NCBI RefSeq assembly: GCF_000315625.1
Contig: NW_005434671.1
Span: 1,103,170 to 1,167,169, forward strand
Source of the DNA: Guillardia theta CCMP2712
Lineage: Eukaryota > Protista > Cryptophyta
Direction of reading: 5' to 3'
DNA length: 64,000 bases
A program made the translations under genes and the position numbers. This document shows, in pieces, positions 8,392 to 14,285 of the stretch (its first letter is position 1; each line of letters begins with the position of its first letter). Under the pieces are notes generated by a model. That model worked only from the letters and a program-made list of their open reading frames with translations. It searched no databases and had not been told where the DNA came from.

Positions 8392-10578
8392 ATGAACGGA
8401 AAGAAACATCCCGACACCATTCATAGTCCCAACAAGCGCGCAAGACGAGGATACCAGTCAGATGCCAGCTTTAGACCTGCAATCGCCTGCGTCGGGATCG
8501 ATTTTGGAACTTCAAGAACTGGGTTTGCTTACGCTTTCATGGACAGACAAGGTATATGACAAGAAACAAGTTGTTCCTGCACATCTGTGAGTTATTGTCT
8601 CTCCTGCAGACGAGATCTTCTGTCGAGAACCGGGAGGTCAGGAGCCTGGCAAGACTCTGACCAACCTTCTCTTGACCAGAGATGAAGAGTTCATAGCCTT
8701 CGGATCACGAGCGAGGGAGGAATACTACGAAGGAGACCCTTCCGCTCTCTTCTTTGAGAACTTCAAGATGCTGCTCAACGAGGTCGATGGAGGATCCTAC
8801 CCTGTAGTCTCCGCTCTCAACGGCAGGGAGGCGTCGCTACGGACCGTCCTCGCTCACTCGTTGAAGTATGTCAAGGACGAGGCCATGGCTACCTTGAACC
8901 GTTGCAGCGCGGTCGAGATCAAGGCCGACCAAGTCAAGTGGGTAGTGACAGTTCCTGCCATCTGGTCCGACTGCGCCAAGGTGACCTTAGGTGGCTCTCA
9001 TGTGCTGTGGGCTGATGCTGCTGATTCAGGCGATGATGCGGAAAGCTGCTCTAGATGCAGCGCTGATCAAGGAGGAGACGTCGCAACTGCTGCAGCTGGC
9101 GCTGGAGCCGGAGGCTGCCTGTATGGTGTGCGAGAGAGAGAATGTCTGCCTGAGAGCCGGGGATCAGTTCATGGTGGTGGACTGTGGAGGGGGAACGATC
9201 GATATAACCATGTCGTGCGTTCATTCATGCAACCCTCTCAGTCTTGACGAGCTGGCGGCTCCGTCCGGCGGGCCCTGGGGCTCTACATACGTGGACAGGG
9301 AGTTTGAGAAGTTTATCTTGGAGCTGTTGGGAGAGCAAGCGTTCAACTGCTCCAAGGAGTCTGTTGTTTGGATCGAAGTCTTGCGTACGTGGGAGGCAGT
9401 GAAGAACTCCTTCGATCCCAAGGGGCTGGCTAAAGTTGCTTTCTCCAACCTCAACGGAGGTGTTCAGGGCGGGATGAGCATGGGGACTGGCGAGGGAGCG
9501 AGTGGGAGGAGCGGGGGAAGGGTGATCAACCTGGCCCCCCTCCTTGTGCTCAATAACCTTCAGCTAGAACCTCTAGTTCAGGCCTTCAATCAGAAGCATC
9601 CTGACAAGCCTCTGCAGATCCGGATGATGACTGCCGTCATGTTGCCAAACGAGCTCATCATGAGCTTCTTTGCCCCCGTGCTCAGAAACATCACACGCCA
9701 CATATCCAGGCTCATCTCCTCCCATCGCATCGACTACATCTTCGTCGTCGGCGGGTTCGCGGAGTCGAAAGTGCTGCAGGAAAACTTGAAGTTCAACTTC
9801 GAGGCTTGCGATAGGAGAATCGTCGTGCCAACTCGACCAAGTCTGGCGGGTAAAGCCCGGCCTGTCTGCTAGCGCGCCGCTCACTCAATCGCATCTTGTC
9901 TTCTCGATGTTGTTTGCCGACAGTGTCTGCCGATGATGTTTGGTCATGGTTGTCGATCATGTTGCCACGTATGTTGTATCGAACAAGGCTTGCTCATGGT
10001 GTGTGATGATTTTGTCCAACCATGTCAAATACAGATGTAGTGTCGCACACTGACCTTCTCGGACACATGGCTGACTGACGTTGTTCTCCTCAGTTGTGAG
10101 AGGAGCTGTGATGTTCCAACTCTCACAGGGAGAGCGCTTCCGCAGCAGGATCGCTCGCTTCACCTACGGGTGTGACATCCTGGAGCCCTTCGACCCCTTC
10201 GACAGGCGTCACCGGGACCGCAAGCTTCACTTCAAGACGGAGGAGGGCAAGATGGTGCCGTATGTTCGCATCTTCAACCCGCTCGTCCTCAAGGGAACGA
10301 GGATGAGTCCATCCTTTGAGGTGACTCAGGCACAGTTTGAGTCGGTCGAGGACAGTCAGGACATGTGCGACTTCGACATCCTGGCAAGCGTGGAGGAGGA
10401 GGTGCAGAACATCGAGGATGCAAAGACGATCGGGTCTGTGGGGGTGAAGCTCAAGGCAGGACAGGAGGCGGCGCTGTCGCTGTCCTTCGGCAAGACGGAG
10501 ATACAGGCGACGGCGATGAACCTGACGACAGGAGAGAAGTCTCGAGCTGTCATCGACTGGGGTTTCGACTCTGTCTGA
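8392..10578 (+). CDS. HSPA12-like atypical Hsp70 family protein (multi-exon)
   Basis: 'VGIDFGTSRTGFAYAF', 'WVVTVPAIW', 'LALEPEAA', 'VVDCGGGTID', 'GGPWGSTYVDREF', 'VVGGFAES', 'VVRGAVMF...SRIARFTYG', 'FGKTEIQATA'. Confidence 0.88.
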
Positions 10579-10686
10579 AGATGTGGAGAGCGGGAGGAGC
10601 AGACGGAGGAGAGGCGGGACAGGAGAAGGAGGAGGAGGAGGCAGGAGGAAAGATTTGGTATAGAGCATGCACCTTGCGATAAAATC

Positions 10687-11411
10687 TCAACAAGTGGATC
10701 CAAACTGCTGGTCAATTATCTCCAAGATCTGCCTCCTCCTCGGCCCGTTGCTAATCCCCATCCTCCTCAGACGTTCCTCGCTCATCTCCTGCTCACAGCC
10801 TCAGCGGAAAGATGGGAAGGAGGAGGGAGGGACCAAGAGCGAGCTCCCCGTCATCGAGCTCCTCTCGAACAGCAGCGCTTCCTCCGCGTGCCCGTGGCTC
10901 CTTAGCCAGTCACCTACCTGAGACACTGTCCACGCCCTGCAAGGTGTCAGTTGGAAGAGGGTGGCACTTGCTGGTAAACCAGGTACAGGTGGATGGGTAC
11001 AGGTGAAGGAAGATCAGGAGGTCAATGTTGAGGAAGAGGATATGGGACGAGGACAAGGATGCGAAGGAGGAGGAGGGCAAAAGGAGAAGAAGGAGGAGGA
11101 GCAAGAGGAGAAGGAGGAGCAGGAGCAGGAGCAGGAGGAGGAGGAGGAGGAGGAGGAGGAGGAGCAAGAGTAGAAGGAGGAGCAGGAGCAGGAGCAGGAG
11201 CCGGGATGGCACCTGGGGTTCACAGAACGAGAGGGTCTGATGGCTCGGATGACATTCTGAGGAGAGACGCTTATTTCTCGTTTCATGCCGTGAAGTCGGA
11301 CAAGCAGCCTGCCCGTCACCTGATAGAACGACTATGTGAGCAACAGCAGGAGGAAGCAAAGGATGCAGCAGGAAGTGAGTTGAAGGAGGAGGCGGTGTTG
11401 GTGGTGGTACC

Positions 11412-11450
<39 letters not shown>

Positions 11451-13058
11451 ACAGAAATTGAAGCATGCACCTCATCAATAGCTACAACGGTTCCATCCAG
11501 ACCGTTCAGCTCCTGTTCTCGCCGAAGCCCCACCAGCTTCACTCTCCCTCCTGTCGCGTCCCACAAGTCTGGAATTCCTCTCCTCTCTCCTCCCACGTCT
11601 TTCTCTGGAGCTCTCCTCCTCCTCACGTACGTTCTCCAAAGATCTTTCACCGCCTCCCCCCACTCCGTCACCGAGTCTCTTCGCGCCGCCTCCAGAGCTC
11701 GACGACCCAGGGCGAGCAGCAGGAGCTGAGCTGGAAGGAGTTTGAGGAAAATTCCCAGCTCCCTCCTTGTGTGCCGCAGGGACAAGAAGTTCCATGGAGT
11801 CTGGACGACACTCGCGGCAATGGCGCCGGCGAGGTGACCGCAGAGGGAGACTCGAAGAGGGTCAGCAAGCTGAGAGATGATGACCTGAAGTGGTGCGAGT
11901 TAGGACCAGGTAGGTGCTGAGGAAGAAACGAGGGGGAGCAAACAAGATCATGATCGACAAACTTTGTAAGGAGAGGGAAGAAGGGAGGGAGGGAGGGAGG
12001 GAGGGAGAGGATATGGGGAAGGGAGGGAGGGAGGGAGGGAGGGAGGGAGAGGATATGGCGGAGGGTTGACCTGGAGGTACGGGGCCCAGTACGACGGGAT
12101 GCAGAGTCTTGGCGAACCCCATCGCTTCTCGATGTATCTCCGCAAGTACTTGACAACCTGCAAGGGAAGGAACTAAGGAAGAGAACAAGAGGGAGGGGGG
12201 AGGGAGTACGTAGAGCCGAATCTCAGGGGGGAGGTCGCTGAGAGGGAAGCAGAACAAGGAGCCTCCTGCAAACATCTCCGTCCCGATGGCGTTCAGTGCA
12301 AAGAGGATCCCGCTGAAGCCGATGGAGACTGTTGTCAAAGAGATCTGATGCATCACCAGCCTTCTGACGACCTGATGGACGCTTGCTCGCGGCAAGAAGC
12401 CTCCGAGTTGGACCTGTCTTGTATCCTTGAAGCCCAACAGGCTCCCCACCGCATTCAAGAGGACGGTCGTCGAGACGTGCGCCAGCCCGACGCTTGGGAT
12501 TAGAAGGGAGACGAGGAGAGCAAACTTGAAGGATCCTATCCTATCCTCGACCTTGTTCCCAAGAGCTGCAAGTGCGAGCATGTTAGAGACTAGATGCGCA
12601 TGGTTGAGATGGAGGAAGATGCCGGTCAGAAGCCGATGTCCCTCCCTCATGGGGTACAAGAGGATCCTGTCGGGGCTGATGCCCAAACTCGCTGCGGGGT
12701 CCTTGCCGAGCAAGCCAACCTTGGCAAAGAGATAGCAAAGCACGTTGATGATGAGCAGAGCACGTGTGGTTGGCCGCAGCCTCTGCATCGCCTCCATGAT
12801 AAGGTCCTGAAGCGACGGGCCGGAGCCTTCCCGTCTTGACAGCAGGTCCCTCAGCATTTGGAGGACGTCCCTTTCGTCGTTGCCGCCGCGTAGCGACATG
12901 GCGCGGGGGCTCTCGTGCACTGGAGGGGAGCGCACAGAGGTCAATTGTAGTTGGGCATGCACGTCATGAATCCGCAAGCTGGATCCTCTCACTTTCACGA
13001 GCCCCTGCACAGCAGCAGCGAGACTGAGCGCGAGGACGAGAGCAAGGGTCTTCATCAT
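10687..13058 (-). CDS. Rhomboid intramembrane serine protease (RHBDL4/RHBDD1-like) with C-terminal SH3-like and SAM domains
   Basis: Signal peptide; 'RLLTGIFLHLNHAHLVSNM', catalytic 'GFSG' and 'GHLAG'. Six exons joined in frame by GT-AG introns end in 'AWTVSQVGDWLRSHG...FERSSMTGSSLL|EMSEERLRRMGISNGPRRRQILEII' (SAM). Confidence 0.85.
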
Positions 13059-13475
13059 GAGAGTTGCGTGCTGTTCGGTCAGTTGCCGCTACGTGCGACG
13101 ATGGGAGGCAGCGCTTGCTCTTGGCCATTCGATCATCAGCTACTTCCTATCCTCTGACGCTGCTCCATGACGAATCAGCCTTCAACCCGTTCGAGCAAGT
13201 TTCATCCTGTTCGATCCCAACTCAGACACGAGCTTTACCCATGACTCCTCTTCCTCTTGCTTCCCGTCTTCCTCCTCCCATCCTCCCTCCTCCCTCCCTC
13301 CCTCTCGCCTCTCTGTCCCTGCTCCCTGCTCCCTGCTCCCTGCTCCCTGCTCCCCCGGCCTCTTGCTCCTGACCTTCGCCATGGAACTTCGACATCGCAT
13401 TTCGCCAGGTTTGTGCGGCAGCTCCCTACCTGTAAGTGTCCAATTAGAGCTGTAATAAGGCAGCAATCCCCAGCC

Positions 13476-14285
13476 ATGGCGGCCTGCAGGAGGAAACATG
13501 TTCTGCTCGCTGCCGCGCTCTCCAGCCTCGTCATGCTCACTGCAGGCTTCATCCCTCCGTCATGCCTGCCGACAAAGTCGCTGAGAGCGTCTGCTCGCAT
13601 GCTCGTGCCGCGGAAGCGCCGAGGGCGCGGGCAGGTCATGATGGCTAGAGGGGGGCTGGGTGGCTTCTTCGAGAAGTTTCTAGGGGGTGCAGGAGAGGAC
13701 GAGAGCAGGAGGGAGTACGATGAGGTTCTCCGGACCCTGTCCTGTGCCGAAGGATGGGACATCAGCATGGAGATCGGATCTACCCCAGCACGGAACGCCG
13801 GGGGCACAGGATCGCTGGCGAAGAAAGACACCATGACGGTGCAGATCGGAGCATCGGTGAGGTTGGATGTGGACGAAGGGTACGATCCTCCTCAGGGTTC
13901 GGTTATCCTCACATCCGAGTCGAAGATCTTTGACGGTATAGGCTTCTGGAGCGTCCAGGAGGACACGGACGACGGGGTTCCGACAGCCATCCAGGCAAGT
14001 CTGAACAGCCCCATCGGGATCACCGTGAGCGGGGAGACCATCGTGAGCCCGGGTCAGGTGTTCCTCAACTTCAAGGTGAAGAGGGAGGAGAGGAGGGAGG
14101 GAGAGGTCTTCTACGACATGCCTAGGGGCCTGGTGACTGTCAAGGAGGACCTGAAAAGCTCCTTTCTCTTCGCCTCCTACGATGGGCTGCTAGCCGAGTT
14201 CAAGCTGATAGGAACTTGCACAGCGAGGAGGAGGACGAAGGAGGGAGTTAAGGAGGAAGAGACGAAGGAAGAAACTGAAGGATGA
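13476..14285 (+). CDS. Intronless hypothetical protein with bipartite plastid-targeting presequence
   Basis: 'MAACRRKHVLLAAALSSLVMLTAG-FIPPS' signal peptide with Phe at +1, an R/S-rich transit peptide, then a ~190 aa beta-rich globular region. Confidence 0.7.
   Translation: MAACRRKHVLLAAALSSLVMLTAGFIPPSCLPTKSLRASARMLVPRKRRGRGQVMMARGGLGGFFEKFLGGAGEDESRREYDEVLRTLSCAEGWDISMEIGSTPARNAGGTGSLAKKDTMTVQIGASVRLDVDEGYDPPQGSVILTSESKIFDGIGFWSVQEDTDDGVPTAIQASLNSPIGITVSGETIVSPGQVFLNFKVKREERREGEVFYDMPRGLVTVKEDLKSSFLFASYDGLLAEFKLIGTCTARRRTKEGVKEEETKEETEG

Follow-up and report, generated by a model that had tools for sequence, protein, structure and literature searches.

The stretch of DNA analysed here (64,000 nucleotides (nt) of the cryptophyte alga Guillardia theta CCMP2712, contig NW_005434671.1, positions 1,103,170 to 1,167,169; hereafter the window) carries on its minus strand, at 13058-10687, a six-exon gene for a predicted rhomboid protease whose C-terminal tail consists of a small beta barrel and a sterile alpha motif (SAM) domain. 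The five introns are all of the GT..AG type, and the spliced coding sequence is 1662 nt long, which makes 553 codons and a stop. The gene was modelled from the three minus-strand frames across 10600-13200, followed by a check of the splice sites, and the spliced model was run exon by exon in Pfam and sequence searches. A word search with the exon 1 frame retrieved P0001, a stored 553-amino-acid (aa) open reading frame (ORF) that is derived from transcripts and classed as complete in MMETSP, its source. Analyses of the whole protein were made on P0001. The features of the gene, in window coordinates, are as follows.

13059..13208, minus strand: 5' untranslated region (UTR), given by the extent of assembled transcripts; four upstream ATGs
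12210..13058, minus strand: exon 1, aa 1-283; predicted signal peptide, spacer, MSLRGG box, N-terminal helices, and transmembrane (TM) helices TM1-TM4 with H155/N159 and S249
12314-12312, minus strand: codon of S249
12158..12209, minus strand: intron 1, 52 nt, GT..AG; joint seen in three runs
12071..12157, minus strand: exon 2, aa 284-312; L4 insert specific to the family, and beginning of TM5
11885..12070, minus strand: intron 2, 186 nt, GT..AG; (CCCT)n-like low complexity
11471..11884, minus strand: exon 3, aa 313-450; end of TM5, TM6 with H329, seventh helix, basic linker and first barrel half
11836-11834, minus strand: codon of H329
11320..11470, minus strand: intron 3, 151 nt, GT..AG; (GCT)n-rich; placed from contig blocks
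11213..11319, minus strand: exon 4, aa 451-485 and two bases of codon 486; second barrel half (to 11242) and linker
10937..11212, minus strand: intron 4, 276 nt, GT..AG; (CTC)n-rich
10834..10936, minus strand: exon 5, last base of codon 486 and aa 487-520; first SAM half
10789..10833, minus strand: intron 5, 45 nt, GT..AG; joint seen in three runs
10687..10788, minus strand: exon 6, aa 521-553 and stop; second SAM half
10654..10686, minus strand: 3' UTR, ending at the poly(A) junction; shared in part with the 3' end of a convergent plus-strand gene

The transcript and its conservation

Is the chain of six exons a real messenger? A preliminary description of the locus, made from the sequence alone, had proposed five GT-AG introns that join in frame, and this model is matched by P0001 and by the transcript contigs of three studies. 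All exon translations occur in P0001 at 100% identity and in order, and the codon split between exons 4 and 5 is AGG, which encodes R486. Contigs assembled from three runs of three studies align to the genome in six blocks (10676-10787, 10833-10935, 11212-11316, 11468-11880, 12067-12155 and 12208-13208) with zero mismatches, and all five introns are absent within single records. One boundary of the early model had to be corrected. Exon 4 had been ended at '...QNV' and actually continues 12 codons further, to '...SVNP' and two bases of the split codon; the rest of the model stood. Transcripts ending before the barrel and SAM exons, the outcome named in the preliminary description as speaking against the fusion, were looked for, and the tail exons were found to lie in the mRNA. 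Part of intron 4 was retained in one low-depth contig (depth 5.2 vs 20.4). Raw RNA reads of a fourth run placed the poly(A) site of the minus-strand mRNA, because their poly(T) loose ends begin before ~10654, ~33 nt past the stop. The gene is present as a single copy in the genome assembly (87.1 Mb, 669 contigs), which holds at least nine rhomboid loci.

Further evidence comes from relatives. About 10 of 1.84 billion representatives match the protein at E<1e-30. Two of them, P0007 (541 aa) and P0009 (551 aa), contain Rhomboid, barrel and a SAM domain recognized at Pfam level; P0008 (578 aa) has the same order with a decayed barrel and SAM; and P0050, P0092 and P0168, which are fragments or intron-containing calls, also keep the domain order. 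In all, at least six diverged relatives have this layout. Compared with P0007, identity is 43% in the barrel, 48% in the SAM domain and 50-54% in the core, while the spacer and linkers are unconserved. In P0007 the whole layout is encoded by one ORF without interruption, on a metagenomic contig of 10.5 kb, and an uninterrupted genomic ORF excludes an artefact of splicing or assembly. The idea that a rhomboid gene and a separate SAM gene were joined by a chimera, by read-through or in assembly draws only on how often such artefacts generally arise in de novo transcriptomes. It is refuted by the same six-block transcript in three independent studies, by the poly(A) site after the SAM exon and by the order kept in relatives, P0007 included, and its probability is negligible.

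How new is the architecture? Full-text searches of the literature on rhomboids with a sterile alpha motif or SAM domain found no account of a rhomboid-SAM fusion, and neither SAM nor SH3 is mentioned in a rhomboid superfamily review from 2025. The earlier statement that no characterized rhomboid-SAM fusion is known agrees with both. As far as these searches reach, the label of a new architecture fits in the sense of being undescribed in the literature. It does not fit in the sense of being unseen, since public collections already contain the protein, its Rhomboid and SAM Pfam matches precomputed, and the layout is common to a small clade. Among 168 retrieved proteins, the combinations Rhomboid plus SAM and Rhomboid plus barrel were restricted to this clade. 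A word-index search with the tail (aa 425-553) returned the protein itself only, and a search with the family alignment added P0168. Among relatives with a name, the closest comes from the cryptophyte Hanusia phi, and the taxonomic range of the clade rests on that one named sequence. Rhomboid followed by barrel and SAM is a real, expressed, conserved and uncharacterized architecture, and a variant of a well-known protease family.

Two observations concern the ends and the depth of the transcript. The convergent plus-strand gene has its ORF stop at 10578 and reads to ~10687, so the 3' ends of the two genes overlap (10500-10700). At 11576-11640, in the Gly/Arg/Glu-rich linker of exon 3, contig depth doubles, and contigs of two runs run into unrelated sequence at 11576. 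This suggests either a segment shared with another transcript or an assembly junction of low complexity.

Protease core, barrel and SAM domain

The 553-aa protein is, as judged from its sequence, a catalytically intact rhomboid intramembrane serine protease and is predicted to be active. The Pfam Rhomboid family (PF01694) matches P0001 at 47 bits against a cut-off of 22.6, and exon 1 alone reaches 42.6 bits. The catalytic and supporting residues are H150, H155 and N159 in TM2, R142 in L1, S249 in GFSG and H329 in GHLAG. Hence all motifs of an active rhomboid that the preliminary description had quoted (HxxxN, the GFSG serine and the GHLAG histidine) are present; its list of features had missed a seventh helix (aa 353-373) and an LRGG box. 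The supporting residues are conserved in those relatives that extend over the columns concerned. S249 is invariant across relatives wherever it is aligned, and H329 is retained too, except in two short predicted proteins (P0002 and P0018), whose alignment breaks down there. The family profile matches GlpG at 1.8e-7, and GlpG of E. coli is the best solved match both by sequence profile and by fold. The full-length AlphaFold2 (AF2) model has a mean predicted local distance difference test score (pLDDT) of 75, with ~85-95 in the core. Its best Foldseek matches are all GlpG (template-modelling score by target 0.6-0.68), at E-values of only ~1e-3 because the model is 553 aa long. NCBIfam gave sub-threshold matches of the protein to GlpG and rhombosortase and none above threshold, and exons 2, 3 and 4 alone gave no Pfam match, as they are too short or not in Pfam.

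The protein shares with GlpG and other rhomboids (PF01694, MEROPS S54) the six-helix core, the His and Asn of TM2, GxSG in TM4, GHxxG in TM6 and the Arg of L1. It differs from them by large family-specific inserts between TM3 and TM4 and between TM4 and TM5, by [HY]R in place of WR in L1, and by the addition of a seventh helix, a signal-peptide leader and the barrel-SAM tail. By hydropathy and in the AF2 model, two short helices occupy aa 62-93 and the six rhomboid helices occupy aa 96-342. The seventh hydrophobic helix (aa 353-373, 11764-11702, hydropathy 2.1) lies within a continuous AF2 helix at 348-382 and is conserved among relatives as LLP.H...W.LGRRAV.

The preliminary description had set the protein against the RHBDL4 type of rhomboid, and this frame is not supported. 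RHBDL4/RHBDD1 and the plant proteins RBL14/RBL15 share with it an active rhomboid (here predicted) with a soluble C-terminal adaptor tail, and possibly a link to a machine derived from endoplasmic-reticulum-associated degradation (ERAD). However, the RHBDL4 type is a plain six-TM form with both termini in the cytosol, whereas this protein has a seventh TM helix and a signal peptide. It also lacks their tail domains: a Pfam search of the tail at E-values up to 5 found SAM only and no UIM, VBM, UBA or RanBP2 zinc finger. No specific sequence affinity to RHBDL4, RBL14 or RBL15 is shown, and the nearest relatives beyond its own clade are unnamed generic rhomboids (E 1e-6 to 1e-9).

The SAM domain (aa 486-548) scores 45.6 bits against SAM_2 (PF07647; cut-off 20.5) and 38.2 bits against SAM_1 (PF00536; cut-off 23). 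The claim of a SAM domain is therefore borne out well above the cut-off and within the same mRNA as the rhomboid. Exons 5 and 6, searched separately, each account for one half of the SAM_2 profile (positions 4-36 and 38-63, respectively). The closest solved SAM sequences are those of Aveugle, CNK2 and SAMD12 (E 2e-5 to 0.01 over ~60-80 residues); here such a domain is attached to a polytopic protease. AF2 predicts a compact helical bundle with helices at 490-499, 503-515, 524-529 and 536-549.

The other part of the tail is a five-stranded beta barrel at aa 421-476 (from 11560 in exon 3), modelled by AF2 at pLDDT 96-97. Its best neighbours are the KOW domains of Spt5 and NusG: it matches SPT5 KOW6-7 with a VIA Z-score of 9.1 and a root-mean-square deviation (rmsd) of 1.7 over 58 residues, and KOW5 with a Foldseek template-modelling score by target of 0.87 and an rmsd of 1.4. 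As a group, Spt5 KOW5-7, the C-terminal domain of NusG and the Tudor domain of PHF19 share the five-stranded barrel at Z 8-9 and rmsd 1.7-1.8 over 54-58 residues, and the barrel pattern G-x-x-V...G-L...L-N-G-x-x-G-x-V is reminiscent of the KOW motif. However, the best match leads the Tudor, PWWP, Mib and NdhS barrels by no more than one Z unit, and because of these ties with Tudor, NusG and other barrels the scores establish the fold class alone. No Pfam KOW (PF00467) match was found in the tail, and a sub-threshold match to MSSS SH3 (E 0.14) was the only one. The SH3/KOW-like label of the preliminary description thus holds at the level of fold (AF2, VIA, Foldseek) and fails as membership of Pfam KOW.

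What distinguishes the barrel from KOW and Tudor domains is a repeat family of its own. In an exhaustive search of representatives, aa 421-485 matched some proteins many times. A local iterative search of the retrieved set defined a module of ~57 aa with the pattern G..V.v.GL....ELNG..G.v..wd...gRw.V, present in 31 proteins in all and with up to 28 copies in one protein of 2380 aa. The copies stand in tandem in large proteins such as P0011, P0024 and P0035. No Pfam family reaches its cut-off on the module. Two further loci of the same genome carry it (G000:C34:313130-313279 and G000:C41:331719-331874). The barrel is one such module, of an unnamed family that forms repeats in algal proteins. 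Structural look-alikes in the ESM Atlas sit beside TPR/Metallophos, PDCD2_C, SET, Sel1, ZZ, CS and zf-MYND domains; these rows serve as leads only, since their template-modelling scores by query are at most 0.50 and several alignments also span the SAM part. The phyla on record are Haptophyta, Bacillariophyta and Chlorophyta, and half the rows are without a taxon.

Could the tail bind nucleic acid? Some SAM domains bind RNA, and the top structural neighbours of the barrel are the KOW domains of Spt5 and NusG. A SAM of the Smaug/Vts1 type together with a NusG/Spt5-like KOW would then tether RNA to a membrane protease. Against this stand the lack of a Pfam KOW match, the tie of the barrel's Z-scores with Tudor, PWWP, Mib and NdhS, which reaches the fold and no further, and the closest SAM domains, which are of the protein-binding Aveugle/CNK/SAMD12 types (Aveugle and CNK form heterodimers). 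The module also sits beside TPR, MYND, ZZ, SET, CS and Sel1 domains, which are contexts of protein interaction, although the Atlas rows are weak. RNA binding by the tail is very improbable. The preliminary description's proposal that the protease may be regulated or targeted by SAM polymerization, or by RNA or partner binding, is conjecture.

The N-terminal leader

Of all the protein's features, the targeting leader says most about where the enzyme may act. Residues 1-19 (13058-13002) form a signal-peptide-like hydrophobic segment with a hydropathy of 2.34, in agreement with the signal peptide of the preliminary description. It is followed by a variable, acid-poor spacer of 34 aa (aa 20-53, 13001-12900) and by a conserved MSLRGG box (aa 54-59, 12899-12882), of which LRGG is aa 56-59. 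In the family alignment, all relatives with a complete N-terminus show a signal peptide, an unconserved spacer and then [ML]-[RS]-[LI]-R-G-G, and conservation of the family starts directly after the box. The signal peptide of P0007 sits in an in-frame upstream extension that had been cut off by the gene caller. A start at M54 was considered, as Met precedes (R/S)LRGG in all close relatives, and was rejected, as the signal peptide is conserved upstream and as this Met stands where the LRLRGG of ubiquitin has its hydrophobic L.

The 5' UTR contains upstream ATGs at 13205, 13168, 13136 and 13128 in the assembled transcripts. The last of them opens an upstream ORF of 54 codons (13128-12964) that overlaps the main start at 13058 in another frame, and the next in-frame Met after the main start is M54, the first residue of the MSLRGG box. 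Translational control, or an isoform without the signal peptide, is possible.

The LRGG-type box resembles the last residues of ubiquitin (LRLRGG), with its first position corresponding to the hydrophobic L of LRLRGG. The same design was found on enzymes of starch synthesis. Three of ~5 starch synthase (PF08323) genes of this genome (L015, G000:C33:444799-448590; L016, C59:468536-472309; L022, C107:165455-168532) encode Met, a hydrophobic signal peptide, a spacer of 30-70 aa and an LRGG that abuts the mature domain. Their leaders end in TLNLRGG, RMSLRGG and LSLRGG, and a fourth gene (L021, C37:427491-430784) has LRLRGG in an exon; in the starch synthases the box opens with L, M or I. The estimated chance of LRGG or IRGG in a leader of 100 residues is ~0.005 per gene. 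In six frames of the window, [LI]RGG occurs eight times, which is about the number expected by chance, and the rhomboid's alone follows a signal peptide. None of the other rhomboids of the genome whose N-termini were readable (four of four) has a signal peptide. Thus the leader appears to be of a periplastid type, composed of a signal peptide, an unconserved spacer and hydrophobic-x-LRGG, as on three to four starch synthase genes.

Two neighbouring features of the window relate to leaders and to the LRGG motif. The divergent gene on the plus strand at 13466-14285 encodes a signal peptide, then Phe where cleavage is likely (..LTAG/F..) and a basic stretch rich in Ser and Arg that has no LRGG; by the aromatic +1 rule this is presumably a stromal-type plastid leader, in contrast to that of the rhomboid. 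On the minus strand at ~6518 and ~16867, two near-identical stretches ~10 kb apart each hold a frame of 40 residues that ends in ..ASGLRGG and a stop, followed by the same downstream sequence, which indicates a dispersed repeat or a segmental duplication within the window.

Proposed location, topology and mechanism

Starch metabolism is periplastidial in this alga (bioRxiv 10.64898/2026.09.25.754361). Because the same leader of signal peptide, spacer and LRGG is found on starch synthases, and because starch synthesis is periplastidial, a location in the periplastid compartment, the relic space surrounding the plastid, is proposed for the rhomboid as well. The periplastid membrane contains SELMA, an importer derived from ERAD. 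In diatoms, a symbiont-specific rhomboid is reported to be a central partner of SELMA membrane components (Lau et al. 2016, cited in PMC6155542), and a review states that periplastid rhomboids exist in cryptophytes too (PMC5756292). The design of the leader together with these published reports makes the gene the best candidate for a SELMA rhomboid in this genome. The diatom protein and this one would both be rhomboid proteases with a bipartite leader in an alga with a red complex plastid, and orthology stands as a candidate relationship only. The reading that appears on balance probable, though far from assured, is that the gene encodes a rhomboid of the periplastid membrane whose tail serves as an adaptor, and which may correspond in cryptophytes to the SELMA-associated rhomboid of diatoms.

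Several points weigh against this reading. The cleavage site of the signal peptide was called by eye and hydropathy alone, and Leu is predicted at +1 in P0001, P0008 and P0009 as well as in P0007 with its extension; Leu at +1 is also permissive for stromal import in diatoms. The NPL4/UFD1 loci found with Pfam in the same genome show no LRGG leader within 1.5 kb, being probably host copies or having a first exon beyond that range. With regard to the tail, the confidence of AF2 in the SAM domain is moderate (pLDDT 60-86). In the lineage of P0008 and P0003-P0005, the barrel has fallen to 20% identity and the SAM lies below the Pfam threshold while the rhomboid core is intact, so the tail is not indispensable everywhere and is apparently dispensable there. 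Finally, seven TM helices put the membrane between the N-terminus and the tail. An N-terminus exposed to the periplastid compartment would then mean a lumenal SAM and barrel, which is unusual for these domains.

How, then, is the tail oriented? The tail may be lumenal, as is the SAM of STIM1, or helix 7 may not span the membrane. A third option is that the signal peptide sets a lumenal N-terminus, which would give an inverted, PARL-like core and a tail on the side equivalent to the cytosol. The charges flanking helix 7 are balanced and therefore do not decide among these options.

One alternative is a host rhomboid of the secretory pathway or the endoplasmic reticulum (ER), of an ERAD-like kind. 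In it the signal peptide would set the topology with a lumenal N-terminus, the LRGG would be a structural or regulatory motif, and the tail would recruit partners in the host cytosol. A cleaved signal peptide and seven TM helices would indeed give a cytosolic tail, the usual site of SAM and KOW/Tudor-like domains, and one of the Atlas clusters close to the protein by protein-language model (0.76) bears the name 'Rhomboid-like protein 15 family', no more than a lead. However, the core would then be upside down relative to ER/Golgi rhomboids, and the tail has no UIM, VBM, UBA or zinc finger by Pfam. Furthermore, the leader has the design of the periplastidial starch synthases, with a spacer as unconserved as a transit peptide and conservation after LRGG. 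A host ER rhomboid is unlikely, though it deserves to be taken seriously.

A second alternative is that the protein crosses all four membranes and is a rhomboid of the plastid envelope or thylakoid. Plants have plastid rhomboids, and the Leu predicted at +1 in P0001, P0008, P0009 and extended P0007 might be read as a weak form of the aromatic-type signal for stromal import. However, these cut sites were placed by eye, P0168 and P0021 are without Leu at +1, and the LRGG leader tracks periplastidial enzymes. The divergent neighbour at 13466-14285 moreover presents what is presumably the stromal type, with Phe at +1 and no LRGG. A plastid location is accordingly given little credence and is distinctly improbable.

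How would a rhomboid of the periplastid membrane work? The leader would direct the protein via the ER into the periplastid compartment and would be removed at or near the LRGG box. The protease would act in a membrane facing the periplastid compartment, most plausibly the periplastid membrane, and may clip membrane-spanning client proteins or clients that are stuck or stalled. The barrel and SAM of the tail would form a platform for protein-protein docking or oligomerization, which may recruit partners or substrates or may cluster the enzyme. This role would be analogous, and not homologous, to that of the ubiquitin- and p97-binding tails of ERAD rhomboids. A more specific version takes the protein as the cryptophyte SELMA rhomboid whose MSLRGG is cut by a periplastid protease of the deubiquitinase type. 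Helix 7 would put barrel and SAM on the side where cargo arrives, and SAM oligomerization and barrel docking would couple cleavage to import. This version is a long shot. If it were true, a cargo-side tail that couples cleavage to import would be an undescribed form of rhomboid regulation.

What is understood of rhomboids concerns mainly the catalytic core, and how accessory domains select substrates or partners is known for few of them, RHBDL4 (UIM and VBM) among them. The conserved tail of SAM and an unnamed algal barrel provides a new and testable case of adaptor-guided intramembrane proteolysis. The same ERAD-derived import machine is essential in apicomplexan parasites. If the periplastid location is correct, the gene would offer a handle on the role of a protease inside the ERAD-derived importer of complex red plastids. 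It would also add a polytopic membrane protein to the set of proteins with LRGG leaders, which bears on where and how these leaders are removed.

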